A stretch of DNA of 64,000 nucleotides from Auanema rhodensis (taxonomy: Eukaryota; Animalia; Nematoda). Location of the stretch: assembly GCA_964057225.1 (NCBI GenBank), contig OZ059896.1, positions 4,030,001-4,094,000 of the forward strand, read 5' to 3'. The notes under the pieces were generated by a model that saw only the letters and a list, made by a program, of their open reading frames with translations, made no database searches and was not told the DNA's origin. This document shows positions 1 through 64,000 of this stretch, in pieces (position 1 is the first letter of the stretch; the number at the start of each line of letters is the position of its first letter). Made by a program: the position numbers and the translations under genes.

Positions 1-3000
1 AAAAATTTTTGTCAAAATGTTTTTGGAAGCAATTTTGAGTGTACATGGAAACTCAACATACACTAATGCATCATTTTTCAAACGATCATAACTTATTTTT
101 GTATTAAGCGTTTCTCAATGTAGTATAGTGCATTCGATGCGGATTTTTAAGCTGCGTCGATCTGTAATATCAGATTTGCGCTAGCTTGAAAATGCACCGA
201 GATATCAACTGATATAAGTTCACACCTATATCCTCGATTTTCACCCTGAAGAATTAATTTTTTCGTTGAATAACATTGTCCATCGTTTTTGCCTTGAAAA
301 AAGGAATCTAAAAACATCTACTTTTTGCTAAATTATTTTGAAATTTTTCGAAAAAATTTTTGTCAAAATGTTTTTGGAAGCAATTTTGAGTGTACATGGA
401 AACTCAACATACACTAATGCATCATTTTTCAAACGATCATAACTTATTTTTGTATTAAGCGTTTCTCAATGTAGTATAGTGCATTCGATGCGGATTTTTA
501 AGCTGCGTCGATCTGTACTATCAGATTTGCGCTAGCTTGAAAATGCACCGAGATATCAACTGATATAAGTTCACACCTATATCCTCGATTTTCACCCTGA
601 AGAATTAATTTTTTCGTTGAATAACATTGTCCATCGTTTTTGCCTTGAAAAAAGGAATCTAAAAACATCTACTTTTCGCTAAATTATTTTGAAATTTTTC
701 GAAAAAATTTTTGTCAAAATGTTTTTGGAAGCAATTTTGAGTGTACATGGAAACTCAACATACACTATTGCATCATTTTTCAAACGATCATAACTAATTT
801 TTGTATTAAGCTTTTCTTAATGTAGTATAGTGCATTCGATGCGGATTTTTAAGCTGCGTCGATCTGTACTATCAGATTTGCGCTAGCTTGAAAATGCACC
901 GAGATATCAACTGATATAAGTTCACACTTATATCCTCGATTTTCACCCTGAAGAATTAATTTTTTCGTTGAATAACATTGTCCATCGTTTTTGCCTCAAA
1001 AAAAGGAATTTAAAAACATCTACTTTTCGCTAAATTATTTTGAAATTTTTCGAAAAAATTTTTGTCAAAATGTTTTTGGAAGCAATTTTGAGTGTACATG
1101 GAAACTCAACATACACTATTGCATCATTTTTCAAACGATCATAACTAATTTTTGTATTAAGCTTTTCTTAATGTAGTATAGTGCATTTGATGCGGATTTT
1201 TAAGCTGCGTCGATCTGTACTATCAGATTTGCGCTAGCTTGAAAATGCACCGAGATATGAACTGATATAAGTTCACACTTATATCCTCGATTTTCACCCT
1301 GAAGAATTAATTTTTTCGTTGAATTACATTGTCCATCGTTTTTGCCTTGAAAAAAGGAATCTAAAAACATCTACTTTTCGCTAAATTATTTTGAAATTTT
1401 TCGAAAAAATTTTTGTCAAAATGTTTTTGGAAGCAATTTTGAGTGTACATGGAAACTCAACATACACTAATGCATCATTTTTCAAACGATCATAACTTAT
1501 TTTTGTATTAAGCGTTTCTCAATGTAGTATAGTGCATTCGATGCGGATTTTTAAGCTGCGTCGATCTGTACTATCAGATTTGCGCTAGCTTGAAAATGCA
1601 CCGAGATATGAACTGATATAAGTTCACATTTATATCCTCGATTTTCACCCTGAAGAATTAATTTTTTCGTTGAATTACATTGTCCATCGTTTTTGCCTTG
1701 AAAAAAGGAATCTAAAAACATCTACTTTTCGCTAAATTATTCTGAAATTTTTCGAAAAAATTTTTGTCAAAATGTTTTTGGAAGCAATTTTGAGTGTACA
1801 TGGAAACTCAACATACACTAATGCATCATTTTTCAAACGATCATAACTAATTTTTGTATTAAGCGTTTCTCAATGTAGTATAGTGCATTCGATGCGGATT
1901 TTTAAGCTGCGTCGATCTGTACTATCAGATTTGCGCTAGCTTGAAAATGCACCGAGATATCAACTGATATAAGTTCACACCTATATCCTCGATTTTCACC
2001 CTGAAGAATTAATTTTTTCGTTGAATAACATTGTCCATCGTTTTTGCCTTGAAAAAAGGAATCTAAAAACATCTACTTTTTGCTAAATTATTTTGAAATT
2101 TTTCGAAAAAATTTTTGTCAAAATGTTTTTGGAAGCAATTTTGAGTGTACATGGAAACTCAACATACACTAATGCATCATTTTTCAAACGATCATAACTT
2201 ATTTTTGTATTAAGCGTTTCTCAATGTAGTATAGTGCATTCGATGCGGATTTTTAAGCTGCGTCGATCTGTACTATCAGATTTGCGCTAGCTTGAAAATG
2301 CACCGAGATATGAACTGATATAAGTTCACACTTATATCCTCGATTTTCACCCTGAAGAATTAATTTTTTCGTTGAATTACATTGTCCATCGTTTTTGCCT
2401 TGAAAAAAGGAATCTAAAAACATCTACTTTTCGCTATATTATTTTGAAATTTTTCGAAAAAATTTTTGTCAAAATGTTTTTGGAAGCAATTTTGAGTGTA
2501 CATGGAAACTCAACATACACTAATGCATCATTTTTCAAACGATCATAACTAATTTTTGTATTAAGCGTTTCTCAATGTAGTATAGTGCATTCGATGCGGA
2601 TTTTTAAGCTGCGTCGATCTGTAATATCAGATTTGCGCTAGCTTGAAAATGCACCGAGATATCAACTGATATAAGTTCACACCTATATCCTCGATTTTCA
2701 CCCTGAAGAATTAATTTTTTCGTTGAATAACATTGTCCATCGTTTTTGCCTTGAAAAAAGGAATCTAAAAACATCTACTTTTTGCTAAATTATTTTGAAA
2801 TTTTTCGAAAAAATTTTTGTCAAAATGTTTTTGGAAGCAATTTTGAGTGTACATGGAAACTCAACATACACTAATGCATCATTTTTCAAACGATCATAAC
2901 TTATTTTTGTATTAAGCGTTTCTCAATGTAGTATAGTGCATTCGATGCGGATTTTTAAGCTGCGTCGATCTGTAATATCAGATTTGCGCTAGCTTGAAAA

Positions 3001-6000
3001 TGCACCGAGATATCAACTGATATAAGTTCACACCTATATCCTCGATTTTCACCCTGAAGAATTAATTTTTTCGTTGAATAACATTGTCCATCGTTTTTGC
3101 CTTGAAAAAAGGAATCTAAAAACATCTACTTTTTGCTAAATTATTTTGAAATTTTTCGAAAAAATTTTTGTCAAAATGTTTTTGGAAGCAATTTTGAGTG
3201 TACATGGAAACTCAACATACACTAATGCATCATTTTTCAAACGATCATAACTTATTTTTGTATTAAGCGTTTCTCAATGTAGTATAGTGCATTCGATGCG
3301 GATTTTTAAGCTGCGTCGATCTGTACTATCAGATTTGCGCTAGCTTGAAAATGCACCGAGATATCAACTGATATAAGTTCACACCTATATCCTCGATTTT
3401 CACCCTGAAGAATTAATTTTTTCGTTGAATAACATTGTCCATCGTTTTTGCCTTGAAAAAAGGAATCTAAAAACATCTACTTTTTGCTAAATTATTTTGA
3501 AATTTTTCGAAAAAATTTTTGTCAAAATGTTTTTGGAAGCAATTTTGAGTGTACATGGAAACTCAACATACACTAATGCATCATTTTTCAAACGATCATA
3601 ACTTATTTTTGTATTAAGCGTTTCTCAATGTAGTATAGTGCATTCGATGCGGATTTTTAAGCTGCGTCGATCTGTACTATCAGATTTGCGCTAGCTTGAA
3701 AATGCACCGAGATATCAACTGATATAAGTTCACACCTATATCCTCGATTTTCACCCTGAAGAATTAATTTTTTCGTTGAATAACATTGTCCATCGTTTTT
3801 GCCTTGAAAAAAGGAATCTAAAAACATCTACTTTTTGCTAAATTATTTTGAAATTTTTCGAAAAAATTTTTGTCAAAATGTTTTTGGAAGCAATTTTGAG
3901 TGTACATGGAAACTCAACATACACTAATGCATCATTTTTCAAACGATCATAACTTATTTTTGTATTAAGCGTTTCTCAATGTAGTATAGTGCATTCGATG
4001 CGGATTTTTAAGCTGCGTCGATCTGTACTATCAGATTTGCGCTAGCTTGAAAATGCACCGAGATATCAACTGATATAAGTTCACACTTATATCCTCGATT
4101 TTCACCCTGAAGAATTAATTTTTTCGTTGAATAACATTGTCCATCGTTTTTGCCTCGAAAGAAGGAATCTAAAAACATCTACTTTTCGCTAAATTATTTT
4201 GAAATTTTTCGAAAAAATTTTTGTCAAAATGTTTTTGGAAGCAATTTTGAGTGTACATGGAAACTCAACATACACTAATGCATCATTTTTCAAACGATCA
4301 TAACTTATTTTTGTATTAAGCGTTTCTCAATGTAGTATAGTGCATTCGATGCGGATTTTTAAGCTGCGTCGATCTGTACTATCAGATTTGCGCTAGCTTG
4401 AAAATGCACCGAGATATCAACTGATATAAGTTCACACTTATATCCTCGATTTTCACCCTGAAGAATTAATTTTTTCGTTGAATAACATTGTCCATCGTTT
4501 TTGCCTCAAAAAAAGGAATCTAAAAACATCTACTTTTCGCTAAATTATTTTGAAATTTTTCGAAAAAATTTTTGTCAAAATGTTTTTGGAAGCAATTTTG
4601 AGTGTACATGGAAACTCAACATACACTAATGCATCATTTTTCAAACGATCATAACTTATTTTTGTATTAAGCGTTTCTCAATGTAGTATAGTGCATTCGA
4701 TGCGGATTTTTAAGCTGCGTCGATCTGTACTATCAGATTTGCGCTAGCTTGAAAATGCACCGAGATATGAACTGATATAAGTTCACACTTATATCCTCGA
4801 TTTTCACCCTGAAGAATTAATTTTTTCGTTGAATTACATTGTCCATCGTTTTTGCCTTGAAAAAAGGAATCTAAAAACATCTACTTTTCGCTAAATTATT
4901 TTGAAATTTTTCGAAAAAATTTTTGTCAAAATGTTTTTGGAAGCAATTTTGAGTGTACATGGAAACTCAACATACACTAATGCATCATTTTTCAAACGAT
5001 CATAACTAATTTTTGTATTAAGCGTTTCTCAATGTAGTATAGTGCATTCGATGCGGATTTTTAAGCTGCGTCGATCTGTACTATCAGATTTGCGCTAGCT
5101 TGAAAATGCACCGAGATATCAACTGATATAAGTTCACACCTATATCCTCGATTTTCACCCTGAAGAATTAATTTTTTCGTTGAATAACATTGTCCTTCGT
5201 TTTTGCCTTGAAAAAAGGAATCTAAAAACATCTACTTTTTGCTAAATTATTTTGAAATTTTTCGAAAAAATTTTTGTCAAAATGTTTTTGGAAGCAATTT
5301 TGAGTGTACATGGAAACTCAACATACACTAATGCATCATTTTTCAAACGATCATAACTAATTTTTGTATTAAGCGTTTCTCAATGTAGTATAGTGCATTC
5401 GATGCGGATTTTTAAGCTGCGTCGATCTGTACTATCAGATTTGCGCTAGCTTGAAAATGCACCGAGATATCAACTGATATAAGTTCACACTTATATCCTC
5501 GATTTTCACCCTGAAGAATTAATTTTTTCGTTGAATTACATTGTCCATCGTTTTTGCCTTGAAAAAAGGAATCTAAAAACATCTACTTTTCGCTAAATTA
5601 TTTTGAAATTTTTCGAAAAAATTTTTGTCAAAATGTTTTTGGAAGCAATTTTGAGTGTACATGGAAACTCAACATACACTATTGCATCATTTTTCAAACG
5701 ATCATAACTAATTTTTGTATTAAGCTTTTCTTAATGTAGTATAGTGCATTCGATGCGGATTTTTAAGCTGCGTCGATCTGTACTATCAGATTTGCGCTAG
5801 CTTGAAAATGCACCGAGATATGAACTGATATAAGTTCACACTTATATCCTCGATTTTCACCCTGAAGAATTAATTTTTTCGTTGAATTACATTGTCCATC
5901 GTTTTTGCCTTGAAAAAAGGAATCTAAAAACATCTACTTTTCGCTAAATTATTTTGAAATTTTTCGAAAAAATTTTTGTCAAAATGTTTTTGGAAGCAAT

Positions 6001-9000
6001 TTTGAGTGTACATGGAAACTCAACATACACTAATGCATCATTTTTCAAACGATCATAACTAATTTTTGTATTGAGCGTTTCTCAATGTAGTATAGTGCAT
6101 TCGATGCGGATTTTTAAGCTGCGTCGATCTGTACTATCAGATTTGCGCTAGCTTGAAAATGCACCGAGATATCAACTGATATAAGTTCACACTTATATCC
6201 TCGATTTTCACCCTGAAGAATTAATTTTTTCGTTGAATTACATTGTCCATCGTTTTTGCCTTGAAAAAAGGAATCTAAAAACATCTACTTTTCGCTAAAT
6301 TATTTTGAAATTTTTCGAAAAAATTTTTGTCAAAATGTTTTTGGAAGCAATTTTGAGTGTACATGGAAACTCAACATACACTAGTGCATCATTTTTCAAA
6401 CGATCATAACTTATTTTTGTATTAAGCGTTTCTCAATGTAGTATAGTGCATTCGATGCGGATTTTTAAGCTGCGTCGATCTGTACTATCAGATTTGCGCT
6501 AGCTTGAAAATGCACCGAGATATCAACTGATATAAGTTCACACTTATATCCTCGATTTTCACCCTGAAGAATTAATTTTTTCGTTGAATAACATTGTCCA
6601 TCGTTTTTGCCTTGAAAAAAGGAATCTAAAAACATCTACTTTTCGCTAAATTATTTTGAAATTTTTCGAAAAAATTTTTGTCAAAATGTTTTTGGAAGCA
6701 ATTTTGAGTGTACATGGAAACTCAACATACACTAATGCATCATTTTTCAAACGATCATAACTAATTTTTGTATTAAGCGTTTCTCAATGTAGTATAGTGC
6801 ATTCGATGCGGATTTTTAAGCTGCGTCGATCTGTACTATCAGATTTGCGCTAGCTTGAAAATGCACCGAGATATGAACTGATATAAGTTCACACTTATAT
6901 CCTCGATTTTCACCCTGAAGAATTAATTTTTTCGTTGAATTACATTGTCCATCGTTTTTGCCTTGAAAAAAGGAATCTAAAAACATCTACTTTTCGCTAA
7001 ATTATTTTGAAATTTTTCGAAAAAATTTTTGTCAAAATGTTTTTGGAAGCAATTTTGAGTGTACATGGAAACTCAACATACACTAATGCATCATTTTTCA
7101 AACGATCATAACTATTTTTTGTATTAAGCGTTTCTCAATGTAGTATAGTGCATTCGATGCGGATTTTTAAGCTGCGTCGATCTGTACTATCAGATTTGCG
7201 CTAGCTTGAAAATGCACCGAGATATCAACTGATATAAGTTCACACTTATATCCTCGATTTTCACCCTGAAGAATTAATTTTTTCGTTGAATAACATTGTC
7301 CATCGTTTTTGCCTCGAAAAAAGGAATCTAAAAACATCTACTTTTCGCTAAATTATTTTGAAATTTTTCGAAAAAATTTTTGTCAAAATGTTTTTGGAAG
7401 CAATTTTGAGTGTACATGGAAACTCAACATACACTAATGCATCATTTTTCAAACGATCATAACTAATTTTTGTATTAAGCGTTTCTCAATGTAGTATAGT
7501 GCATTCGATGCGGATTTTTAAGCTGCGTCGATCTGTACTATCAGATTTGCGCTAGCTTGAAAATGCACCGTGATATGAACTGATATAAGTTCACACTTAT
7601 ATCCTCGATTTTCACCCTGAAGAATTAATTTTTTCGTTGAATTACATTGTCCATCGTTTTTGCCTTGAAAAAAGGAATCTAAAAACATCTACTTTTCGCT
7701 AAATTATTTTGAAATTTTTCGAAAAAATTTTTGTCAAAATGTTTTTGGAAGCAATTTTGAGTGTACATGGAAACTCAACATACACTAATGCATCATTTTT
7801 CAAACGATCATAACTTATTTTTGTATTAAGCGTTTCTTAATGTAGTATAGTGCATTCGATGCGGATTTTTAAGCTGCGTCGATCTGTACTATCAGATTTG
7901 CGCTAGCTTGAAAATGCACCGAGATATCAACTGATATAAGTTCACACTTATATCCTCGATTTTCACCCTGAAGAATTAATTTTTTCGTTGAATAACATTG
8001 TCCATCGTTTTTGCCTTGAAAAAAGGAATCTAAAAACATCTACTTTTTGCTAAATTATTTTGAAATTTTTCGAAAAAATTTTTGTCAAAATGTTTTTGGA
8101 AGCAATTTTGAGTGTACATGGAAACTCAACATACACTAATGCATCATTTTTCAAACGATCATAACTAATTTTTGTATTAAGCGTTTCTCAATGTAGTATA
8201 GTGCATTCGATGCGGATTTTTAAGCTGCGTCGATCTGTACTATCAGATTTGCGCTAGCTTGAAAATGCACCGAGATATCAACTGATATAAGTTCACACCT
8301 ATATCCTCGATTTTCACCCTGAAGAATTAATTTTTTCGTTGAAAAACATTGTCCATCGTTTTTGCCTTGAAAAAAGGAATCTAAAAACATCTACTTTTTG
8401 CTAAATTATTTTGAAATTTTTCGGGAAAATTTTTGTCAAAATGTTTTTGGAAGCAATGTTGAGTGTACATGGAAACTCAACATACACTAATGCATCATTT
8501 TTCAAACGATCATAACTAATTTTTGTATTAAGCTTTTCTTAATGTAGTATAGTGAATTCGATGCGGATTTTTAAGCTGCGTCGATCTGTGTTATCAGATT
8601 TCCGCTAGCTTAAAAATGCACCGAGATATGAACTGATATAAGTTCACACCTATATCCTCGATTTTCACCCTGAAGAATTAATTTTTTCGTTGAATTACAT
8701 TGTCCATCGTTTTTGCCTTGAAAAAAAGAATCTAAAAACATCTACTTTTCGCTAAATTATTTTGAAATTTTTCGAAAAAATTTTTGTCAAAATGTTTTTG
8801 GAAGCAATTTTGAGTGTACATGGAAACTCAACATACACTAATGCATCATTTTTCAAACGATCATAACTTATTTTTGTATTAAGCGTTTCTCAATGTAGTA
8901 TAGTGCATTCGATGCGGATTTTTAAGCTGCGTCGATCTGTACTATCAGATTTGCGCTAGCTTGAAAATGCACCGAGATATCAACTGATATAAGTTCACAC

Positions 9001-12000
9001 TTATATCCTCGATTTTCACCCTGAAGAATTAATTTTTTCGTTGAATAACATTGTCCATCGTTTTTGCCTCGAAAAAAGGAATCTAAAAACATCTACTTTT
9101 CGCTAAATTATTTTGAAATTTTTCGAAAAAATTTTTGTCAAAATGTTTTTGGAAGCAATTTTGAGTGTACATGGAAACTCAACATACACTAATGCATCAT
9201 TTTTCAAACGATCATAACTAATTTTTGTATTAAGCGTTTCTCAATGTAGTATGGTGCATTCGATGCGGATTTTTAAGCTGCGTCGATCTGTGTTATCAGA
9301 TTTCCGCTAGCTTAAAAATGCACCGAGATATCAACTGATATAAGTTCACACCTATATCCTCGATTTTCACACTGAAGAATTAATTTTTTCGTTGAATAAC
9401 ATTGTCCATCGTTTTTGCCTTGAAAAAAGGAATCTAAAAACATCTACTTTTTGCTAAATTATTTTGAAATTTTTCGAAAAAATTTTTGTCAAAATGTTTT
9501 TGGAAGCAATTTTGAGTGTACATGGAAACTCAACATACACTAATGCATCATTTTTCAAACGATCATAACTAATTTTTGTATTAAGCGTTTCTCAATGTAG
9601 TATAGTGCATTCGATGCGGATTTTTAAGCTGCGTCGATCTGTACTATCAGATTTGCGCTAGCTTGAAAATGCACCGAGATATCAACTGATATAAGTTCAC
9701 ACCTATATCCTCGATTTTCACCCTGAAGAATTAATTTTTTCGTTGAAAAACATTGTCCATCGTTTTTGCCTTGAAAAAAGGAATCTAAAAACATCTACTT
9801 TTTGCTAAATTATTTTGAAATTTTTCGGGAAAATTTTTGTCAAAATGTTTTTGGAAGCAATGTTGAGTGTACATGGAAACTCAACATACACTAATGCATC
9901 ATTTTTCAAACGATCATAACTAATTTTTGTATTAAGCTTTTCTTAATGTAGTATAGTGCATTCGATGCGGATTTTTAAGCTGCGTCGATCTGTGTTATCA
10001 GATTTGCGCTAGCTTGAAAATGCACCGAGATATCAACTGATATAAGTTCACCCCTATATCCTCGATTTTCACCCTGAAGAATTAATTTTTTCGTTGAATT
10101 ACATTGTCCATCGTTTTTACCTCGAAAAAAGGAATCTAAAAACATCTACTTTTCGCTAAATTATTTCGAAATTTTTCGAAAAAATTTTTGTCAAAATGTT
10201 TTTGGAAGCAATTTTGAGTGTACATGGAAACTCAACATACACTATTGCATCATTTTTCAAACGATCATAACTAATTTTTGTATTAAGCTTTTCTTAATGT
10301 AGTATAGTGCATTCGATGCGGATTTTTAAGCTGCGTCGATCTGTACTATCAGATTTGCGCTAGCTGGAAAATGCACCGAGATATGAACTGATATAAGTTC
10401 ACACTTATATCCTCGATTTTCACCCTGAAGAATTAATTTTTTCGTTGAATTACATTGTCCATCGTTTTTGCCTTGAAAAAAGGAATCTAAAAACATCTAC
10501 TTTTCGCTAAATTATTTTGAAATTTTTCGAAAAAATTTTTGTCAAAATGTTTTTGGAAGCAATTTTGAGTGTACATGGAAACTCAACATACACTAATGCA
10601 TCATTTTTCAAACGATCATAACTTATTTTTGTATTAAGCGTTTCTCAATGTAGTATAGTGCATTAGATGCGGATTTTTAAGCTGCGTCGATCTGTACTAT
10701 CAGATTTGCGCTAGCTTGAAAATGCACCGAGATATCAACTGATATAAGTTCACACTTATATCCTCGATTTTCACCCTGAAGAATTAATTTTTTCGTTGAA
10801 TAACATTGTCCATCGTTTTTGCCTCAAAAAAAGGAATCTAAAAACATCTACTTTTCGCTAAATTATTTTGAAATTTTTCGAAAAAATTTTTGTCAAAATG
10901 TTTTTGGAAGCAATTTTGAGTGTACATGGAAACTCAACATACACTAATGCATCATTTTTCAAACGATCATAACTAATTTTTGTATTAAGCGTTTCTCAAT
11001 GTAGTATAGTGCATTCGATGAGGATTTTTAAGCTGCGTCGATCTGTGTTATCAGATTTCCGCTAGCTTAAAAATGCACCGAGATATCAACTGATATAAGT
11101 TCACACCTATATCCTCGATTTTCACCCTGAAGAATTAATTTTTTCGTTGAATAACATTGTCCATCGTTTTTGCCTTGAAAAAAGGAATCTAAAAACATCT
11201 ACTTTTTGCTAAATTATTTTGAAATTTTTCGAAAAAATTTTTGTCAAAATGTTTTTGGAAGCAATGTTGAGTGTACATGGAAACTCAACATACACTAATG
11301 CATCATTTTTCAAACGATCATAACTAATTTTTGTATTAAGCTTTTCTTAATGTAGTATAGTGCATTCGATGCGGACTTTTAAGCTGCGTCGATCTGTGTT
11401 ATCAGATTTGCGCTAGCTTAAAAATGCACCGAGATATCAACTGATATAAGTTCACACCTATATCCTCGATTTTCACCCTGAAGAATTAATTTTTTCGTTG
11501 AATAACATTGTCCATCGTTTTTGCCTTGAAAAAAGGAATCTAAAAACATCTACTTTTTGCTAAATTATTTTGAAATTTTTCGAAAAAATTTTTGTCAAAA
11601 TGTTTTTGGAAGCAATGTTGAGTGTACATGGAAACTCAACATACACTAATGCATCATTTTTCAAACGATCATAACTAATTTTTGTATTAAGCTTTTCTTA
11701 ATGTAGTATAGTGCATTCGATGCGGACTTTTAAGCTGCGTCGATCTGTGTTATCAGATTTGCGCTAGCTTAAAAATGCACCGAGATATCAACTGATATAA
11801 GTTCACACCTATATCCTCGATTTTCACCCTGAAGAATTAATTTTTTCGTTGAATAACATTGTCCATCGTTTTTGCCTTGAAAAAAGGAATCTAAAAACAT
11901 CTACTTTTTGCTGAATTATTTTGAAATTTTTCGAAAAAATTTTTGTCAAAATGTTTTTGGAAGCAATTTTGAGTGTACATGGAAACTCAACATACACTAA

Positions 12001-15000
12001 TGCATCATTTTTCAAACGATCATAACTAATTTTTGTATTAAGCGTTTCTTAATGTAGTATAGTGCATTCGATGCGGATTTTTAAGCTGCGTCGATCTGTG
12101 TTATCAGATTTCCGCTAGCTTAAAAATGCACCGAGATATGAACTGATATAAGTTCACACCTATATCCTCGATTTTCACCCTGAAGAATTAATTTTTTCGT
12201 TGAATGACATTGTCCATCGTTTTTGCCTTGAAAAAAGGAATCTAAAAACATCTACTTTTTGCTAAATTATTCTGAAATTTTTCGAAAAAATTTTTGTCAA
12301 AATGTTTTTGGAAGCAATTTTGAGTGTACATGGAAACTCAACATACACTAATGCATCATTTTTCAAACGATCATAACTAATTTTTGTATTAAGCGTTTCT
12401 CAATGTAGTATAGTGCATTCGATGCGGATTTTTAAGCTGCGTCGATCTGTGTTATCAGATTTCCGCTAGCTTAAAAATGCACCGAGATATCAACTGATAT
12501 AAGTTCACACCTATATCCTCGATTTTCACCCTGAAGAATTAATTTTTTCGTTGAATGACATTGTCCATCGTTTTTGCCTTGAAAAAAGGAATCTAAAAAC
12601 ATCTACTTTTTGCTAAATTATTCTGAAATTTTTCGAAAAAATTTTTGTCAAAATGTTTTTGGAAGCAATTTTGAGTGTACATGGAAACTCAACATACACT
12701 AATGCATCATTTTTCAAACGATCATAACTAATTTTTGTATTAAGCGTTTCTCAATGTAGTATAGTGCATTCGATGCGGATTTTTAAGCTGCGTCGATCTG
12801 TGTTATCAGATTTCCGCTAGCTTAAAAATGCACCGAGATATCAACTGATATAAGTTCACACCTATATCCTCGATTTTCACCCTGAAGAATTAATTTTTTC
12901 GTTGAATGACATTGTCCATCGTTTTTGCCTTGAAAAAAGGAATCTAAAAACATCTACTTTTTGCTAAATTATTCTGAAATTTTTCGAAAAAATTTTTGTC
13001 AAAATGTTTTTGGAAGCAATTTTGAGTGTACATGGAAACTCAACATACACTAATGCATCATTTTTCAAACGATCATAACTAATTTTTGTATTAAGCGTTT
13101 CTTAATGTAGTATAGTGCATTCGATGCGGATTTTTAAGCTGCGTCGATCTGTGTTATCAGATTTCCGCTAGCTTAAAAATGCACCGAGATATGAACTGAT
13201 ATAAGTTCACACCTATATCCTCGATTTTCACCCTGAAGAATTAATTTTTTCGTTGAATGACATTGTCCATCGTTTTTGCCTTGAAAAAAGGAATCTAAAA
13301 ACATCTACTTTTTGCTAAATTATTCTGAAATTTTTCGAAAAAATTTTTGTCAAAATGTTTTTGGAAGCAATTTTGAGTGTACATGGAAACTCAACATACA
13401 CTAATGCATCATTTTTCAAACGATCATAACTAATTTTTGTATTAAGCGTTTCTCAATGTAGTATAGTGCATTCGATGCGGATTTTTAAGCTGCGTCGATC
13501 TGTGTTATCAGATTTCCGCTAGCTTAAAAATGCACCGAGATATCAACTGATATAAGTTCACACCTATATCCTCGATTTTCACCCTGAAGAATTAATTTTT
13601 TCGTTGAATGACATTGTCCATCGTTTTTGCCTTGAAAAAAGGAATCTAAAAACATCTACTTTTTGCTAAATTATTCTGAAATTTTTCGAAAAAATTTTTG
13701 TCAAAATGTTTTTGGAAGCAATTTTGAGTGTACATGGAAACTCAACATACACTAATGCATCATTTTTCAAACGATCATAACTAATTTTTGTATTAAGCGT
13801 TTCTTAATGTAGTATAGTGCATTCGATGCGGATTTTTAAGCTGCGTCGATCTGTGTTATCAGATTTCCGCTAGCTTAAAAATGCACCGAGATATGAACTG
13901 ATATAAGTTCACACCTATATCCTCGATTTTCACCCTGAAGAATTAATTTTTTCGTTGAATGACATTGTCCATCGTTTTTGCCTTGAAAAAAGGAATCTAA
14001 AAACATCTACTTTTTGCTAAATTATTCTGAAATTTTTCGAAAAAATTTTTGTCAAAATGTTTTTGGAAGCAATTTTGAGTGTACATGGAAACTCAACATA
14101 CACTAATGCATCATTTTTCAAACGATCATAACTAATTTTTGTATTAAGCGTTTCTCAATGTAGTATAGTGCATTCGATGCGGATTTTTAAGCTGCGTCGA
14201 TCTGTGTTATCAGATTTCCGCTAGCTTAAAAATGCACCGAGATATCAACTGATATAAGTTCACACCTATATCCTCGATTTTCACCCTGAAGAATTAATTT
14301 TTTCGTTGAATGACATTGTCCATCGTTTTTGCCTTGAAAAAAGGAATCTAAAAACATCTACTTTTTGCTAAATTATTCTGAAATTTTTCGAAAAAATTTT
14401 TGTCAAAATGTTTTTGGAAGCAATTTTGAGTGTACATGGAAACTCAACATACACTAATGCATCATTTTTCAAACGATCATAACTAATTTTTGTATTAAGC
14501 GTTTCTCAATGTAGTATAGTGCATTCGATGCGGATTTTTAAGCTGCGTCGATCTGTGTTATCAGATTTGCGCTAGCTTGAAAATGCACCGAGATATCAAC
14601 TGATATAAGTTCACACCTATATCCTCGATTTTCACCCTGAAGAATTAATTTTTTCGTTGAATGACATTGTCCATCGTTTTTGCCTTGAAAAAAGGAATCT
14701 AAAAACATCTACTTTTTGCTAAATTATTCTGAAATTTTTCGAAAAAATTTTTGTCAAAATGTTTTTGGAAGCAATTTTGAGTGTACATGGAAACTCAACA
14801 TACACTAATGCATCATTTTTCAAACGATCATAACTAATTTTTGTATTAAGCTTTTCTTAATGTAGTATAGTGCATTCGATGCGGACTTTTAAGCTGCGTC
14901 GATCTGTGTTATCAGATTTGCGCTAGCTTAAAAATGCACCGAGATATCAACTGATATAAGTTCACACCTATATCCTCGATTTTCACCCTGAAGAATTAAT

Positions 15001-17727
15001 TTTTTCGTTGAATAACATTGTCCATCGTTTTTGCCTTGAAAAAAGGAATCTAAAAACATCTACTTTTTGCTAAATTATTTTGAAATTTTTCGAAAAAATT
15101 TTTGTCAAAATGTTTTTGGAAGCAATGTTGAGTGTACATGGAAACTCAACATACACTAATGCATCATTTTTCAAACGATCATAACTAATTTTTGTATTAA
15201 GCTTTTCTTAATGTAGTATAGTGCATTCGATGCGGACTTTTAAGCTGCGTCGATCTGTGTTATCAGATTTGCGCTAGCTTAAAAATGCACCGAGATATCA
15301 ACTGATATAAGTTCACACCTATATCCTCGATTTTCACCCTGAAGAATTAATTTTTTCGTTGAATAACATTGTCCATCGTTTTTGCCTTGAAAAAAGGAAT
15401 CTAAAAACATCTACTTTTTGCTGAATTATTTTGAAATTTTTCGAAAAAATTTTTGTCAAAATGTTTTTGGAAGCAATTTTGAGTGTACATGGAAACTCAA
15501 CATACACTAATGCATCATTTTTCAAACGATCATAACTAATTTTTGTATTAAGCTTTTCTTAATGTAGTATAGTGCATTCGATGCGGATTTTTAAGCTGCG
15601 TCGATCTGTGTTATCAGATTTGCGCTAGCTTGAAAATGCACCGAGATATCAACTGATATAAGTTCACACCTATATCCTCGATTTTCACCCTGAAGAATTA
15701 ATTTTTTCGTTGAATTACATTGTTCATCGTTTTTGCCTCGAAAAAAGGAATCTAAAAACATCTACTTTTCGCTAAATTATTTTGAAATTTTTCGAAAAAA
15801 TTTTTGTCAAAATGTTTTTGGAAGCAATTTTGAGTGTACATGGAAACTCAACATACACTATTGCATCATTTTTCAAACGATCATAACTAATTTTTGTATT
15901 AAGCTTTTCTTAATGTAGTATAGTGCATTCGATGCGGTTTTTTAAGCTGCGTCGATCTGTGCTATCAGATTTCCGCTAGCTTAAAAATGCACCGAGATAT
16001 CAACTGATATAAGTTCACACCTATATCCTCGATTTTCACCCTGAAGAATTAATTTTTTCGTTGAATAACATTGTCCATCGTTTTTGCCTTGAAAAAAGGA
16101 ATCTAAAAACATCTACTTTTTGCTAAATTATTTTGAAATTTTTCGAAAAAATTTTTGTCAAAATGTTTTTGGAAGCAATTTTGAGTGTACATGGAAACTC
16201 AACATACACTATTGCATCATTTTTCAAACGATCATAACTAATTTTTGTATTAAGCTTTTCTTAATGTAGTATAGTGCATTCGATGCGGTTTTTTAAGCTG
16301 CGTCGATCTGTGCTATCAGATTTCCGCTAGCTTAAAAATGCACCGAGATATCAACTGATATAAGTTCACACCTATATCCTCGATTTTCACCCTGAAGAAT
16401 TAATTTTTTCGTTGAATAACATTGTCCATCGTTTTTGCCTTGAAAAAAGGAATCTAAAAACATCTACTTTTTGCTAAATTATTTTGAAATTTTTCGAAAA
16501 AATTTTTGTCAAAATGTTTTTGGAAGCAATGTTGAGTGTACATGGAAACTCAACATACACTAATGCATCATTTTTCAAACGATCATAACTAATTTTTGTA
16601 TTAAGCTTTTCTTAATGTAGTATAGTGCATTCGATGCGGACTTTTAAGCTGCGTCGATCTGTGTTATCAGATTTGCGCTAGCTTAAAAATGCACCGAGAT
16701 ATCAACTGATATAAGTTCACACCTATATCCTCGATTTTCACCCTGAAGAATTAATTTTTTCGTTGAATAACATTGTCCATCGTTTTTGCCTTGAAAAAAG
16801 GAATCTAAAAACATCTACTTTTTGCTAAATTATTTTGAAATTTTTCGAAAAAATTTTTGTCAAAATGTTTTTGGAAGCAATTTTGAGTGTACATGGAAAC
16901 TCAACATACACTATTGCATCATTTTTCAAACGATCATAACTAATTTTTGTATTAAGCTTTTCTTAATGTAGTATAGTGCATTCGATGCGGATTTTTAAGC
17001 TGCGTCGATCTGTACTATCAGATTTGCGCTAGCTTGAAAATGCACCGAGATATGAACTGATATAAGTTCACACTTATATCCTCGATTTTCACCCTGAAGA
17101 ATTAATTTTTTCGTTGAATAACATTGTCCATCGTTTTTGCCTTGAAAAAAGGAATCTAAAAACATCTACTTTTCGCTAAATTATTTTGAAATTTTTCGAA
17201 AAAATTTTTGTCAAAATGTTTTTGGAAGCAATGTTGAGTGTACATGGAAACTCAACATACACTAATGCATCATTTTTCAAACGATCATAACTAATTTTTG
17301 TATTAAGCTTTTCTTAATGTAGTATAGTGCATTCGATGCGGACTTTTAAGCTGCGTCGATCTGTGTTATCAGATTTGCGCTAGCTCAAAAATGCACCGAG
17401 ATATCAACTGATATAAGTTCACACTTATATCCTCGATTTTCACCCTGAAGAATTAATTTTTTCGTTGAATAACAATGTCCATCGTCTTTGTCTTGAAAAA
17501 AGAAATCTAAAAACATCTACTTTTTGTGAAATTATTTTGTAATTTTTCGGGAAACTTTTTGTCAAAATGTTTTTGGAAGCAATGTTGAGTGTACATGGAA
17601 ACTCAACATACACTAATGCATCATTTTTCAAACGATCATAACTAATTTTTGTATTGAGCGTTTCTCCATGTAGTATAGTGCATTCGATGCGGATTTTTAA
17701 GCTGCGTCGATCTGTGTTATCAGATTT
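1..17727 (+). repeat. 351-bp tandem satellite, left array (~50.5 monomers, continues beyond window start)
   Basis: Motifs recur every 351 bp. Homologous ORFs at 991/15733 (42x351) and 11824/17440 (16x351) show exact phase. The array ends at ...TATCAGATTT (17727). Confidence 0.98.
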
Positions 17728-17754
17728 ACTTCAACTTCTAATCAACAACCCAAC

Positions 17755-17770
17755 GGCCCTCTTTAGGGCC
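17755..17770 (+). terminator. Replication-dependent histone mRNA 3' stem-loop (SLBP-binding hairpin), nematode-type loop CTTT
   Basis: CCCAAC-GGCCCT-CTTT-AGGGCC-ACA gives a 6-bp stem and 4-nt loop with typical A/C-rich flanks. It matches the C. elegans histone hairpin, which has C at loop position 1. Confidence 0.9.
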
Positions 17771-18156
17771 ACATTTAAATTTGATGTATTCATAATGATT
17801 TATAATATAATACTGTGTCTGTCTTGTCTTTTTTTGCTATGTAATGATAATTGATATGATATGTTTCGCTGTTATGTAAAGGAGAATCCCTATCTTTGAT
17901 ACTCCATATCCATCTCTATTTTTTTTTATGAATTTCATTAATTATGCTTTCATGTTGATAACAACAACAGTGATCATATCTAATGCCTCACATGTTTCTA
18001 TTCCACGTTTGTTCGCAAATAAACAGTTGTTTATGTTATTCTTATCGTTTATATAAAATTTAAATATACATTTCTAGAATTTCTAGCAAAATTAAGCGCC
18101 AATATGCTTGGTGGCGATTACAATGGGTTTTTGCGCGGTGACCTCTACAGCACTAG

Positions 18157-18163
18157 TATATAA
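18157..18163 (+). promoter_or_regulatory. Putative TATA box of histone H4 promoter (TATATAA)
   Basis: Lies 49 bp upstream of the H4-like ATG within a locally GC-richer segment, consistent with the short 5' UTRs of histone genes. Confidence 0.6.
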
Positions 18164-18205
18164 CGGAGATGCTAGGGTTACTATTCAACACACAGCTTGA
18201 TCAGC

Positions 18206-18250
18206 ATGTCTGAACGTGGTAAAGGAGGAAAAGGTCTTGAATTTATATGA
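18206..18250 (+). pseudogene. H4: Histone H4 5' fragment, copy 1 (MSERGKGGKGLEFI*)
   Basis: ATG TCT GAA CGT GGT AAA GGA GGA AAA GGT CTT matches H4 MSGRGKGGKGL at 10/11 residues, with G>E at codon 3. Homology then stops and TGA follows. 'GL' favours H4 over H2A. Confidence 0.85.
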
Positions 18251-18588
18251 TTGAATAATAAAATAGTGATTGACTTATCTGTGCTATGTGCTTGTTGTTG
18301 ATTAGAAGTTGAAGTAATTGATTGGTAGTTGAAGCTGACTACAACCGCTCTTTCTTTTTTTTAAAATGATATGATTGTTTAGATTTTCATTGCTTGCTTA
18401 TGCTATTTTGAAAATTTGAATATTCTTAGTGTTGTATTTTTTTTAATTTTTATTTTTTCTCTTTTTTTTTTCATATTTATACTTATATATATAAATATAA
18501 TGTATATATTGAGAGATTTAGCTAACTAGTTAATATATTAGCATTTGTACAGTTCGGCTTTCATTGACTTTAGGAATGTGGGCGTGGT

Positions 18589-18825
18589 TTATTTACTCTA
18601 GTATACTCTATACATCTCCTGATAATTGTTTGATCTTATTTATATTTGTTGAAAATTCTTCACATTTTCTTATTGAAAGTGCTTCTTGATATTTCTTCTT
18701 TGCTTTTATTATTTGATTTTACAATGACTTGATATAACTTTCTTTTGTATCCTGTTCATGGAATGAATAATTATATACTGTAGTATAATTTGTACATCTC
18801 TTGATAATTGTTTGTTCTTATTTGT
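18589..18825 (-). repeat. Diverged ~180-bp satellite monomers (T-rich orientation)
   Basis: TTATTTACTCTAGTATAC, CTTCTTGATA and GTATCCTGTTCATGGA match core-satellite motifs with extra substitutions. Confidence 0.8.
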
Positions 18826-19855
18826 TATCCATGAACAGGATACGAAAGAAAGTTATAACAAGTCATTGAAAAATTAAGTATTAAAAACAAAAAAAAAGTA
18901 TCAAGAAGCATTTTCAGTAAGAAAACATGAAGAAATTTTAACAAATACAAATAAGAATGAGAAAATTATCAAGAGATGCATAACGTATTATAGAGTATCA
19001 GTAAACATTTAAAATATGAACAGGTTTCAAAAAAAGTAATATCAATTCATGGGAAAGTATTAAAAGCAGAGAAGAAGTATCAAGAAGGATTTTCAGTAAG
19101 AAAACATGAAGTAATTTTAACAAATACAAAGAAGAATGAGAAAATTATCAAGAGATATATAACGTACTATAGAGTATCAGTAAACATTTTAAATATGAAC
19201 AGGTTTCAAAAAAAGTTATAACAAGTCATGGTAAAATCAAGTTTTAAAAGCAAAGAAGAAGTATCAAGAAGGATTTTCAGCAAGAAAACATGAAGAAATT
19301 TTAACAAATACAAAGAAGAATGAGAAAATTATCGAAAGATGTACAAATTATACTAGAGTATCCGTAAACATTTAAAATATGAACAGGTTTCAACAAAAGT
19401 AATATCAAGTCATGATAAAATCAAGTATTAAAAACAAAAAAAAAGTATCAAGAAGCATTTTCAGTAAGAAAACAGGAAGAAATTTTAACAAATACAAAAC
19501 AGAATGACAAAATTATCGAAAGATGTACAAAGTATACTAGAGTATCAGTAAACATTTAAAATATGAACAGGTTTCAACAAAAGTAAAATCAAGTCATGAT
19601 AAAATCAAGTATTAAAAACAAAAAAAAAGTATCAAGAAGCATTTTCAGTAAGAAAACAGGAAGAAATTTTAACAAATACAAAAAAGAATGAGAAAATTAT
19701 CAAGAGATGTACAAAATATACTAGAGTAAAATATTATTTATTCCATGAACATGATACGAAAGAAAGTTATAACAAGTCATGGTAAAATCAAGTATTAAAA
19801 ACAAAAAAAAGTATCAAGAAGCATATTCAGTAGGAAAACATGAAGAAATTTTAAC
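18825..19855 (+). repeat. 179-184-bp satellite block, A-rich orientation
   Basis: Repeating AAGTATCAAGAAG..TTTTCAGTAAGAAAACATGAAGAAATTTTAACAAATAC units. Confidence 0.93.
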
Positions 19856-20661
19856 TTTGTTCGCAAATAAACAGTTGTTTATGTTATTCTTATCGTTTAT
19901 ATAAAATTTAAATATACATTTCTAGAATTGAGCGGCAAAATTAAGCGCCAATATGCTTGGTGGCGATTACAATGGGTTTTTGCGCGGTGACCTCTACAGC
20001 ACTAGTATAGAACGGAGATGCTAGGGTTACTATTCAACACACAGCTTGATCAGCATGTCTGAACGTGGTAAAGGAGGAAAAGGTCTTGAACTTATATGAT
20101 TGAATAATAAAATAGTGATTGACTTATCTGTGCTATGTGCTTGTTGTTGATTAGAAGTTGAAGTAATGATGCTGACTACAACCGCTCTTTCTTTTTTTTA
20201 AAATGATATGATTGTTTAGATTTTCATTGCTTGCTTATGCTATTTTGAAAATTTGAATATTCTTAGTGTTGTATTTTTTTAAATTTTTATTTTTTCTCTT
20301 TTTTTTTCATATTTATACTTATATATATAAATATAATGTATATATTGAGAGATTTAGCTAACTAGTTAATATATTAGCATTTGTACAGTTCGGCTTTCAT
20401 TGACGTTAGGAATGTGGGCGTGGTTTATTTACTCTAGTATACTCTATACATCTCCTGATAATTGTTTGATCTTATTTATATTTCTTGAAAATTCTTCACA
20501 TTTTCTTATTGAAAGTGCTTCTTGATATTTCTTATTTGCTTTTATTATTTGATTTTACAATGACTTGATATAACTTTCTTTTGTATCCTGTTCATGGAAT
20601 GAATAATTATATACTGTAGTATAATTTGTACATCTCTTGATAATTGTTTGTTCTTATTTGT
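19856..20661 (+). repeat. Histone-derived cassette, copy 2 (direct repeat of 18008-18825; lacks the stem-loop end)
   Basis: Starts abruptly at TTTGTTCGCAAATAAAC after satellite TTAAC and is colinear with copy 1. Its TATA reads TATAGAA (20006-20012). Confidence 0.93.
20055..20099 (+). pseudogene. H4: Histone H4 5' fragment, copy 2 (MSERGKGGKGLELI*)
   Basis: Same 11 codons and same breakpoint as copy 1. Confidence 0.85.
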
Positions 20662-21090
20662 ATTTGTAGAAATTTTCCAAAACAAAATGCTTCTTAACAC
20701 TTTTTCTTTGTTTTTAATACTTGATTTTACCATGACATGATATAACTTTCTTTCGTATCCTGCTCATGGAATAAATAATAGTTTACTCTAGTATACTCTG
20801 TACATCTCCTGAAAATTTTCTCATTCTACTTTGTATTCTTTAAAAATTCTTCATGTTTTCTTACTGAAAATACTTCTTGATACTTCTTCTTTGCTTTTAA
20901 AACTTGATTTTATCATGACTTGTTATAACTTTTTTTGAAACCTGTTTATATTTAAAATGTTTACTGATACTCTATAGTACGTTATATATCTCTTGATAAT
21001 TTTCTCATTCTTCTTGGTATTTGTTAAAATTTTTTTATGTTTTCCTACTGAAGATGCTTCTTGATACTTTTTTTTGTTTTTAATACTTGA
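20425..21090 (-). repeat. ~180-bp satellite block, T-rich orientation (diverged at its left end)
   Basis: Reverse-complement monomers ending at TAATACTTGA. Confidence 0.88.
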
Positions 21091-22590
21091 AGCATTTTCA
21101 GTAAGAAAACATGAAGAAATTTTAACAAATACAAAGAAGAATGAGAAAATTATCAAGAGATGTACAAAGTATACTAGAGTAAACTATTATTTTATCCATG
21201 AACAGGATACGAAAGAAAGTTATATCAAGTCATTGAAAAATCAAGTATTAAAAACAAAGAAAAAGTATCAAGAAGCATTTTCAGTAAGAAAACATGAAGA
21301 AATTTTAAAGAATACAATTAAGAATGAGAAAATTATCAGGAGATGTACAGAGTATACTAGAGTAAATAATTATTTACTACATGAACAAGATACGAAAGAA
21401 AGTAATATCAAGTCATGATAAAATCAAGTATTAAAAACAAAGAAGAAGTATCAAGAAGGATTTTCAATAAGAAAACATGAAGAAATTTTAACAAATACAA
21501 ATAAGAATGAGAAAATTATCAAGAGATGTATAACATATTATAGAGTATCAGTAAACATTTAAAATATGAACAGGTTTCAAAAAAAGTAATATCAACTCAT
21601 GGGGAAATCAAGTTTTAAAAGCAAAGAAGAAGTATCAAGAAGGATTTTCATTAAGAAAACATGAAGAAATTTTAACAAATACAAATAAGAATGAGAAAAT
21701 TATCAAGAGATGTATAACATATTATAGAGTATCAGTAAACATTTAAAATATGAACAGGTTTCAAAAAAAGTAATATCAATTCATGGGTAAGTATTAAAAG
21801 CAGAGAAGAAGTATCAAGAAGGATTTTCAGTAAGAAAACATGAAGAAATTTTAACAAATACAAAGAAGAATGAAAAAATTATCAAGAGATGCATAACGTA
21901 TTATAGAGTATCAGTAAACATTTAAAATATGAACAGGTTTCAAAAAAAGTAATATCATTTCATGGGGAAGTATTAAAAGCAAAGAAGAAGTATCAAGAAG
22001 CATTTTCAGTAAGATAACATGAAGAAATTTCAACAAATACAAAAAAGAATGAGAAAATTATCAAGAGATGCATAACGTATTATAGAGTATCAGTAAACAT
22101 TTAAAATATGAACAGGTTTCAAAAAAAGTAATATCATTTCATGGGGAAGTATTAAAAGCAAAGAAGAAGTATCAAGAAGGATTTTCAATAAGAAAACATG
22201 AAGAAATTTTAACAAATACAAAGAAGAATGAAAAAATTATCAAGAGATGCATAACGTATTATAGAGTATCAGTAAACATTTAAAATATGAACAGGTTTCA
22301 AAAAAAGTAATATCATTTCATGGGGAAGTATTAAAAGCAAAGAAGAAGTATCAAGAAGGATTTTCAATAAGAAAACATGAAGAAATTTTAACAAATACAA
22401 AGAAGAATGAAAAAATTATCAAGAGATGCATAACGTATTATAGAGTATCAGTAAACATTTAAAATATGAACAGGTTTCAAAAAAAGTAATATCATTTCAT
22501 GGGGAAGTATTAAAAGCAAAGAAGAAGTATCAAGAAGGATTTTCAATAAGAAAACATGAAGAAATTTCAACAAATACAAATAAGAATGAA
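21089..22590 (+). repeat. 179-184-bp satellite block, A-rich orientation
   Basis: CATGAAG recurs at 21110, 21293, 21476, 21660, 21839, 22018, 22197, 22376 and 22555 (periods 183, 183, 184, then 179). Confidence 0.95.
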
Positions 22591-22594
22591 AGAA

Positions 22595-25500
22595 CCTTCT
22601 TGATACTTCTTCTTTGCATTTAAAACTTGATTTTACCATGACTTGTTATAACTTTTTTTGAAACCTGTTCATATTTAAAATGTTTACTGATACTCTATAG
22701 TACGTTATATATCTCTTGATAATTTTCTCATTCTTATTTGTATTTGTTGAAATTTCTTCATGTTTTCTTATTGAAAATCCTTCTTGTTACTTCTTCTTTG
22801 CTTTTAATACTTCCCCATGAAATGATATTACCTTTTTTGAAACCTGTTCATATTTTAAATGTTTACTGATACTCTATAATATGTTATACATCTCTTGATA
22901 ATTTTCTCATTCTTATTTGTATTTGTTGAAATTTCTTCATGTTATCTTACTGAAAATGCTTCTTGATACTTTTTTTTGTTTTTAATACTTGATTTTACCT
23001 TGACTTGATATTACTTTCTTTCGTATCATGTTCATGGAATAAATAATAGTTTACTCTAGTATACTTTGTACATCTCTTGATAATTTTCTCATTCTTATTT
23101 GTATTTGTTGAAATTTCTTCATGTTTTCTTATTGAAAATCCTTCTTGATACTTCTTCTTCGCTTTTAATACTTCCCCATGAAATGATATTACTTTTTTTG
23201 AAACCTGTTCATATTTTAAATGTTTACTGATACTCTATTATACGTTATGCATCTCTTGATAATTTTTTCATTCTTCTTTGTATTTGTTAAAATTTCTTCA
23301 TGTTTTCTTACTGAAAATCCTTCTTGATACTTCTTCTCTGCTTTTAATACTTCCCCATGAATTGATATTACTTTTTTTGAAACCTGTTCATATTTCAAAT
23401 GTTTACTGATACTCTATAATATGTTATGCATCTTTCGATAATTTTCTCATTCTTTTTTGTATTTGTTAAAATTTCTTCATGTTTTCTTTTTGAAAATCCT
23501 TCTTGATACTTCTTCTTTGCTTTTAAAACTTGATTTTACCATGATTTGTTATAACTTTTTTTGAAACCTGTTCATATTTTAAATGTTTACTGATACTCTA
23601 TAATACGTTATGCATCTCTTGATAATTTTTTCATTCTTCTTTGTATTTGTTAAAAATTTCTTCATGTTTTCTTACTGAAAATCCTTCTTGATACTTCTTC
23701 TCTGCTTTTAATACTTCCCCATGAATTGATATTACTTTTTTTGAAACCTGTTCATATTTCAAATGTTTACTGATACTCTATAATATGTTATGCATCTTTC
23801 GATAATTTTCTCATTCTTTTTTGTATTTGTTAAAATTTCTTCATGTTTTCTTACTGAAAATCCTTCTTGATACTTCTTCTTTTCTTTTAAAACTTGATTT
23901 TACCATGACTTGTTATAACTTTTTTTGAAACCTGTTCATATTTAAAATGTTTACTGATACTCTATAAAACGTTATATATCTCTTGATAATTTTCTCATTC
24001 TTATTTGTATTTGTTGAAATATCTTCATGTTTTCTTATTGAAAATCCTTCTTGATACTTCTTCTTTGCTTTTAAAACTTGATTTTTCCATGACTTGTTAT
24101 AACTTTTTTTGAAACCTGTTCATATTTAAAATGTTTACTGATACTCTATAGTACGTTATATATCTCTTGATAATTTTCTCATTCTTCTGTGTATTTGTTA
24201 AAATTTCTTCATGTTTTCCTACTGAAGATGCTTCTTGATACTTTTTTTTGTTTTTAATACTTGATTTTACCATGACTTGTTATAACTTTCTTTCGTATCA
24301 TGTTCATGGAATAAATAATATTTTACTCTAGTATATTTTGTACATCTCTTGATAATTTTCTCATTCTTTTTTGTATTTGTTAAAATTTCTTCCTGTTTTC
24401 TTACTGAAAATGCTTCTTGATACTTTTTTTTTGTTTTTAATACTTGATTTTATCATGACTTGATTTTACTTTTGTTGAAACCTGTTCATATTTTAAATGT
24501 TTGCTGATACTCTAGTATACTTTGTACATCTTTCGATAATTTTGTCATTCTTTTTTGTATTTGTTAAAATTTCTTCATGTTTTCTTACTGAAAATCCTTC
24601 TTGATACTTCTTCTTTGCTTTTAAAACTTGATTTTACCATGACTTGTTATAACTTTTTTTGAAACCTGTTCATATTTAAAATGTTTACTGATACTCTATA
24701 GTACGTTATATATCTCTTGATAATTTTCTCATTCTTATTTGTATTTGTTAAAATTTCTTCATGTTTTCTTACTGAAAATGCTTCTTGATACTTTTTTTTG
24801 TTTTTAAAACTTGATTTTATCATGACTTGATATTACTTTCTTTCGTATCTTGTTCATGTAGTAAATAATTATTTACTCTAGTATACTTTGTACATTTCTT
24901 GATAATTTTCTCATTCTTCTTTGTATTCTTAAAAATTTCTTCATGTTTTCTTACTGAAAATCCTTCTTGATACTTCTTCTTTGCTTTTAAAACTCGATTT
25001 TCCCATGAATTGATATTACTTTTTTTGAAACCTGTTCATATTTTAAATGTTTACTGATACTCTATTATACGTTATGCATCTCTTGATAATTTTTTCATTC
25101 TTCTTTGTATTTGTTAAAATTTCTTCATGTTTTCTTACTGAAAATCCTTCTTGATACTTCTTCTCTGCTTTTAATACTTCCCCATGAAATGATATTACCT
25201 TTTTTGAAACCTGTTCATATTTTAAATGTTTACTGATACTCTATAATATGTTATACATCTCTTGATAATTTTCTCATTCTTATTTGTATTTGTTGAAATT
25301 TCTTCATGTTATCTTACTGAAAATGCTTCTTGATACTTTTTTTTGTTTTTAATACTTGATTTTACCTTGACTTGATATTACTTTCTTTCGTATCATGTTC
25401 ATGGAATAAATAATAGTTTACTCTAGTATACTTTGTACATCTCTTGATAATTTTCTCATTCTTATTTGTATTTGTTGAAATTTCTTCATGTTTTCTTATT

Positions 25501-33151: not shown

Positions 33152-33178
33152 GTTGGGTTGTTGATTAGAAGTTGAAGT

Positions 33179-63100: not shown

Positions 63101-64000
63101 TGATCGTTTGAAAAATGATGCATTAGTGTATGTTGAGTTTCCATGTACACTCAACATTGCTTCCAAAAACATTTTGACAAAAATTTTCCCGAAAAATTTC
63201 AAAATAATTTCACAAAAAGTAGATGTTTTTAGATTCCTTTTTTCAAGACAAAGACGATGGACATTGTTATTCAACAAAAAAATTAATTCTTCACGGTGAA
63301 AATCGAGGATATAAGTGTGAACCTATATCAGTTGATATCTCGGTGCATTTTCAAGCTAGCGCAAATCTGATAACACAGATCGACGCAGCTTAAAAATCCA
63401 CATCGAATGCACTATACTACATTGGGAAACACTCAATACAAAAATTTGTTATGATCGTTTGAAAAATGATGCATTAGTGTATGTTGAGTTTCCATGTACA
63501 CTCAACATTGCTTCCAAAAACATTTTGACAAAAATTTTCCCGAAAAATTTCAAAATAATTTCACAAAAAGTAGATGTTTTTAGATTCCTTTTTTCAAGAC
63601 AAAGACGATGGACATTGTTATTCAACAAAAAAATTAATTCTTCAGGGTGAAAATCGAGGATATAAGTGTGAACTTATATCAGTTGATATCTCGGTGCATT
63701 TTTAAGCTAGCGCAAATCTGATAACACAGATCGACGCAGCTTAAAAATCCGCATCGAATGCACTATACTACATTAAGAAAAGCTTAATACAAAAATTAGT
63801 TATGATCGTTTGAAAAATGATGCATTAGTGTATGTTGAGTTTCCATGTACACTCAACATTGCTTCCAAAAACATTTTGACAAAAATTTTCCCGAAAAATT
63901 TCAAAATAATTTCACAAAAAGTAGATGTTTTTAGATTCCTTTTTTCAAGACAAAGACGATGGACATTGTTATTCAACAAAAAAATTAATTCTTCAGGGTG
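33179..64000 (-). repeat. 351-bp tandem satellite, right array, inverted relative to the left (~88 monomers, continues beyond window end)
   Basis: Reverse complement of the left monomer. The ORF track shows a 351-bp period with occasional +/-1 bp. It is a distinct subfamily (e.g. CAAGACAAAGACG, TTTCCCGA, TTTCACAA, CTCAACATT). Confidence 0.98.

Follow-up and report, generated by a model that had tools for sequence, protein, structure and literature searches.

In complete assemblies, strand switches and inversions are seen within arrays of satellite DNA such as Arabidopsis CEN180 and human alpha-satellite. Inverted duplications of the fold-back type, as sequenced elsewhere, have a spacer of 766 bp to 70 kb (median, 3.4 kb) and, at the junction, short homology in inverted orientation (Hermetz et al., 2014; PMC3907307). 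In Auanema rhodense, multi-megabase blocks of tandem repeats with units of 167–504 nt are accompanied by loci for non-coding RNA and by a cluster of histone H3 variants that is eliminated (bioRxiv 10.64898/2026.08.27.747507). Here, we describe a stretch of 64,000 nucleotides from Auanema rhodensis (contig OZ059896.1, positions 4,030,001 to 4,094,000; hereafter, the window), in which two oppositely oriented arrays of a 351-bp satellite break off at the same monomer position and join, in mirror orientation, the same histone-derived cassette, with a second, 184-bp satellite lying between them. The locus is probably (at a probability of roughly 0.62) a rearrangement scar in satellite-rich DNA, without a dedicated function, which would have formed by old inverted duplications of the fold-back type followed by array turnover. 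On present evidence, the locus adds an example to a known type of structure and is neither a new system nor a new kind of chromatin domain.

Similar to the fold-back inverted duplications of Hermetz et al. (2014; PMC3907307), the locus has mirror copies and a spacer of a size within the reported range, and it may have inverted homology at the spacer edge; smaller fold-backs with short spacers are present inside its 184-bp satellite. In contrast to them, only ~1.3–1.5 kb per arm is recognizable as one and the same copy, the structure is old, with satellite turnover laid over it, and there is no terminal deletion or telomere within the window. The likeness to CEN180 and alpha-satellite is that long, homogeneous arrays flip abruptly, each side having its own variants; here, however, the switch spans a non-satellite cassette and a second satellite, instead of taking place in one array. 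The range of unit lengths in the Auanema rhodense repeat blocks (167–504 nt) brackets both 184 and 351, although the preprint (bioRxiv 10.64898/2026.08.27.747507) describes no inverted array layouts. The four published Auanema rhodense probe sequences had no match in the window within six errors.

The outer parts of the window are occupied by two arrays, identified by Tandem Repeats Finder (TRF) and monomer analysis:

1–17376, + strand: array of the left (L) subfamily of the 351-bp satellite, extending past the start of the window.
33179–64000, − strand: array of the right (R) subfamily of the 351-bp satellite, extending past the end of the window.

By TRF, the 351-bp unit is repeated 50.5 times at 1–17727 and 87.8 times at 33179–64000 (98% matches in each case), and several arrays of 179–184 bp sit between the two. 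In a 14-mer dot-plot, the left and right arrays match solely as reverse complements, in agreement with the inverted orientation reported in the initial annotation of this DNA. The two arrays break off at one point of the monomer (...ATCAGATTT), beyond which each is followed by identical non-satellite sequence, and the 15-mer spanning this junction has a single occurrence on each strand (17721–17735, +; 33171–33185, −). The non-satellite sequence is the start of a cassette that is present in two full-length copies, termed A and C, and in one truncated copy, termed B, which is described further below. The full-length copies are:

17728–18671, + strand: cassette copy A (944 bp), running on as 184-bp satellite to 18825.
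32247–33178, − strand: cassette copy C (932 bp), with a satellite tail of 85 bp (32247–32331).

When A (17728–18671) is aligned with C (33178–32247), 929 bases are paired with five mismatches and five gap events, for an identity of 99.46%; this, together with the single junction 15-mer per strand, bears out the earlier claim that both arrays end at CAGATTT and join one cassette in mirror image. Each full-length cassette is comprised of 592 bp of histone-locus DNA, then ~270 bp of AT-rich unique DNA, and then 184-bp satellite, which starts at 18587 in copy A.

The origin of the shared break point is indicated by the monomers on either side. For the alignment, the monomers of both 351-bp arrays were defined in one shared phase (50 left, 87 right). 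The mean number of pairwise differences is 8.3 within the left array (49 whole L-type monomers), 5.0 within the right array (87 whole monomers), and 17.6 for left versus right, in keeping with the earlier view that the arms belong to different satellite subfamilies. The L and R consensus sequences differ at 16 columns (~5%), with 7 of the 16 fixed in both arrays. Runs of identical monomers are found in the left array (L10 = L15; L11 = L13 = L16; L12 = L14; L40 = L41 = L42 = L45 = L50), which points to local amplification in the very recent past. Because differences are so much fewer within the arrays than between them, and because neighboring monomers can be identical, the left and right arrays have been homogenized separately. 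Against this background, one monomer is out of place, as recognized by diagnostic-site and pairwise comparison:

17377–17727, + strand: terminal monomer of the left arm, belonging to the R subfamily.

This monomer has the R state at 7/7 of the sites fixed in both arrays, and its pattern over the 16 sites equals that of the right-array monomer R24, with 6–8 differences from two other right-array monomers (R78 and R01). It stands apart from the other left monomers, the nearest of which is 16 differences away, and the change from L-type to R-type falls between 17202 and 17476. A hybrid of the L and R types was considered for this monomer and dropped, as its pattern equals R24. The tract that was copied at both junctions includes at least 252 bp of R-type 351-bp satellite, the cassette, and the first 85 bp of the 184-bp satellite, with an identity of 97.7–99.5% between the A and C junctions; positions 17377–18671 pair colinearly, in mirror order, with 33529–32247. 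Because the left junction monomer belongs to the right-arm subfamily, the identical break point is one of identity by descent, the whole junction having been copied together. The alternative, in which the arrays broke independently at a hot spot or fragile base of the monomer, was rejected on account of this R-type monomer at the left junction.

The histone-derived part of the cassette contains the following features, which are given for copy A unless otherwise noted:

17726–17749, + strand: left arm of a perfect 24-bp inverted repeat (exact-match search), with its partner at 18294–18317.
17750–17796, + strand: histone mRNA 3′ stem-loop (Rfam RF00032, Histone3), with the stem at 17755–17770.
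18155–18250, + strand: relic of a histone H4 promoter and the start of H4, with a TATA box at 18157–18163, an ATG at 18206, and 14 codons followed by a stop.
33110–33156, − strand: histone mRNA 3′ stem-loop of copy C (Rfam RF00032, Histone3).

The Rfam stem-loop matches cover the full Histone3 model (E-value 1.7e-4, 28.3 bits), at a score under the gathering score of 34. From the ATG at 18206, the translation reads MSERGKGGKGLEFI and then stops, corresponding to residues 1–11 of the standard H4 N-terminus with one change, after which the gene is broken off. The stem-loop and the H4 start uphold the histone derivation that had been proposed for the cassette. A six-frame translation gave no histone-like reading besides this H4 start, and the coding potential found in the window amounts to a single open reading frame of 114 amino acids, lying within satellite. 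The perfect 24-bp inverted repeat encloses the histone-derived 592 bp (in copy C, the pair is at 33157–33180 and 32588–32611). Directly after the right 24-bp arm, copy A has 12 extra bases (18318–18329) that are absent from B and C, and these yield an imperfect tandem copy (15/17 bases) of the arm.

The third copy was identified by BLAST and three-way alignment:

19856–20661, + strand (direct orientation with A): cassette copy B, truncated at the 5′ end.

Copy B begins at the equivalent of position 18008 in A, and thus is without the stem-loop and without the left 24-bp arm, while the right arm is found at 20143–20166. Its 5′ edge is a non-homologous join to inverted 184-bp satellite, and the 20-mer across this join (19849–19868) is unique in the window. 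In BLAST comparisons, the identity of B is 99.4% with C (652 bp) and 97.1% with A (819 bp); in global alignments, the values are 99.39% for B and C (without gaps) and 99.13% for A and B (excluding gapped positions). Over the 652 bp common to all three copies, C has no private changes, B has three, and A has five or six, including the 12-bp indel. One of the changes in B is in the TATA box (20004–20015 region), which reads TATAGAA as opposed to the intact TATATAA of A and C. The junction from cassette to 184-bp satellite is the same in A, B, and C (18587, 20423, and 32331), and a fold-back interrupts the satellite that follows after 239 bp in A, 666 bp in B, and 85 bp in C.

The 184-bp monomer was mapped onto positions 17700–33200, with + denoting the orientation of the main array. 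The resulting orientation map, to which the TRF result for the main array is added, is:

18587–18825, +: 184-bp satellite block.
18831–19921, −: 184-bp satellite block.
20188–20297, +: short match to the 184-bp satellite within copy B.
20423–21088, +: 184-bp satellite block.
21089–22594, −: 184-bp satellite block.
22587–32242, +: main 184-bp satellite array (TRF, 52.9 copies, 88% matches).
32247–32331, −: 184-bp satellite block, the tail of copy C.

The interval that the map left partly unmatched (19922–20422) is part of copy B. Over positions 18587–19855, there are 239 bp in the main orientation, a fold-back, and 1025 bp of inverted 184-bp satellite. In total, the 184-bp satellite switches strand four times (at ~18825/18831, 21060/21089, 22590, and 32242/32247), with fold-back spacers of 65, 28, 46, and ~19 nt, the last of these judged by eye. 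The fold-back arms returned by a repeat finder are 87–97% complementary (87% for the pair at 18634–18762 and 18828–18956), and no arm pair is a perfect palindrome. Since the arms are only 87–97% complementary, the strand switches are old events. Of the ~13.6 kb of different satellite that had been described as enclosed by the cassettes, the 184-bp satellite is indeed present, but a third cassette copy and four strand changes mean that there is no uniform core. When the mirror symmetry of the palindrome is extended into the 184-bp arrays, several array positions match equally well, and such an extension was discarded as ambiguous. Within the main array, a lag histogram gives a weak 3-monomer periodicity, and exact 184-bp matches spaced ~3.1–3.5 kb apart (e.g., near 24302, 27762, and 30877) are hints of larger duplicated segments. 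MicroRNA-like Rfam matches at 21035–21114 scored 23–30 bits against gathering scores of 60–111 and were rejected, as they represent the fold-back hairpin with the 28-nt spacer. A comparison of the 351-bp with the 184-bp satellite, and of each with the cassette, gave no significant similarity.

Several further properties concern the 351-bp satellite itself. The right array consists of two interleaved monomer subtypes, distinguished by GTG versus ATC at alignment columns 39, 48, and 68; these subtypes often alternate, giving a weak 702-bp dimer periodicity, in which adjacent monomers (lag 1) have a mean difference of 5.4 and those two units apart (lag 2) one of 4.3. AT skew reverses between the left and right arms, whereas GC skew keeps one sign although the arms are reverse complements of one another. 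The unflipped GC skew is due to several C/G sites that distinguish the subfamilies: there are ~57 C and 52 G per 351-bp monomer on the left, and the reverse on the right, in the same reading orientation. The monomer also holds a 28-nt imperfect internal palindrome (the GTTGAGT...ACTCAAC region; columns 206–233), as at 17582–17609.

In the explanation that we favor, an ancestral module would have consisted of a 351-bp array with its break after CAGATTT, the 592-bp histone-locus relic, ~270 bp of AT-rich unique DNA, and 184-bp satellite. This module may then have been copied in inverted orientation, as A and C, by an inverted duplication of the fold-back or template-switch type, leaving a spacer of 13.6 kb. 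Afterwards, the 351-bp arrays would have diverged by unequal exchange and local amplification, such that the old type was kept only in the terminal left monomer, an edge monomer that would have escaped homogenization. The single-copy cassette may have changed slowly, or its copies may have been kept alike by conversion from arm to arm. Further fold-back inversions would have taken place within the 184-bp satellite, where the truncated copy B was presumably laid down. We infer the order of these events, the fold-back mechanism, and the extent of the first duplication, which could have involved the long arrays or just the 1.3–1.5 kb at the junction. The gap between A and C measures 13,575 bp (18672–32246) and is made of satellite, and the term single-copy spacer holds loosely. 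At both of its inner edges, 184-bp monomers are found in both orientations, and the original junction is blurred by later turnover; we propose that these oppositely oriented monomers supply the inverted homology of the fold-back type. The reading of the locus as the scar of an inverted duplication, which the initial annotation had offered as one of two possibilities, gains support from the junctions, which are one copied tract, and from the 13.6-kb gap, which is inside the reported spacer range.

Several considerations weigh against this explanation. The sequence of the window leaves room for events in another direction or order, and gene conversion between the arms could keep the cassettes alike whatever the age of the structure. 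High identity extends over just ~1.3–1.5 kb per arm, and the long arrays may never have shared one duplication. Furthermore, the intact promoter and stem-loop motifs in two of the copies could mean that the cassette has been retained for a reason.

An alternative is a functional chromatin domain, in which inverted cassettes would serve as boundaries or promoters around a satellite core, either in a centromere-like arrangement (the cnt/imr/otr layout) or as a source of double-stranded RNA (dsRNA) through convergent transcription. In favor of such a domain, the outer arrays and the inner repeats are both laid out in mirror image, and A and C have an intact TATA box, an intact H4 start, and an intact stem-loop, all pointing inward. 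The core, however, is made of tandem satellite that is inverted in places and holds a third cassette, whose TATA box is mutated, and the symmetry is imperfect, as seen in the unequal 184-bp tails (239, 666, and 85 bp); we consider a domain of this kind unlikely. With the fission-yeast centromere, the locus shares inverted outer repeats, near-identical inverted inner repeats (944 and 932 bp, 99.46% identity), and a distinct middle, but this middle is 184-bp tandem satellite with a truncated cassette and is not unique sequence, and ARAGORN found no tRNA genes in the whole window. The structured, centromere-like domain suggested by the initial annotation thus has the geometry and no more, and we rejected the centromere analogy because the core is satellite and tRNA genes are absent from the window. 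The nematodes that undergo programmed DNA elimination are holocentric. A related and highly improbable idea is that the histone-locus relic might be a recurrent, promoter-bearing module that marks satellite seams along this chromosome: inward-directed H4 promoters would transcribe the inverted 184-bp blocks, and the dsRNA would give rise to small RNAs marking repeats (possibly germline-limited ones) for silencing or elimination.

The remaining alternatives would place the symmetry in the assembly or in a mobile element. Two loci, each with the order 351-bp array, cassette, and 184-bp array, could have been joined head to head in the 184-bp satellite, or one block could have been misoriented, and the exact 184-bp matches that lie kilobases apart in the 184-bp array could mislead an assembler; yet 184-bp monomers are just ~88% alike, so that unique markers are dense, and none of the switch points is perfectly palindromic. 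Moreover, A and C differ by five substitutions and five indels, and the arrays differ by subfamily, which makes a misjoin doubtful. Read artefacts of the fold-back type give identical arms without a spacer, as opposed to the 19–65-nt spacers and 87–97% complementarity of the arms here, and the earlier judgment that a simple artefact of this kind is unlikely stands, there being no perfect palindrome among the arm pairs. The perfect 24-bp inverted repeat, enclosing exactly the histone-derived part, would also be expected if the 592-bp unit were a non-autonomous, terminal-inverted-repeat (“Pack-type”) element that had entered two oppositely oriented arrays in separate events, each time at the same point of the monomer. 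This we regard as quite improbable: A and C have the same R-type monomer as one flank and, as the other, the same ~270 bp of unique DNA with the junction to the 184-bp satellite, which points to segmental copying and not to separate insertions, and the right flank is common to B as well. In addition, the only candidate for a target-site duplication is a trivial TA, itself a part of the palindrome; copy B is without the left arm; and this arm directly adjoins the stem-loop in the full-length copies, as would be expected of a native histone 3′ untranslated region.

As a rare, single-copy-like marker in megabase-scale satellite DNA, the cassette provides fixed points for reconstructing the duplication, inversion, and homogenization of arrays. 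The comparison of the two arms shows that array sequence (~5% apart) turns over faster than the unique DNA embedded in it (0.5% apart), and that monomers at the array edge escape homogenization. If programmed DNA elimination takes place in this genome, as in certain nematodes, the cassette could help to trace how germline-limited repeat blocks are built.

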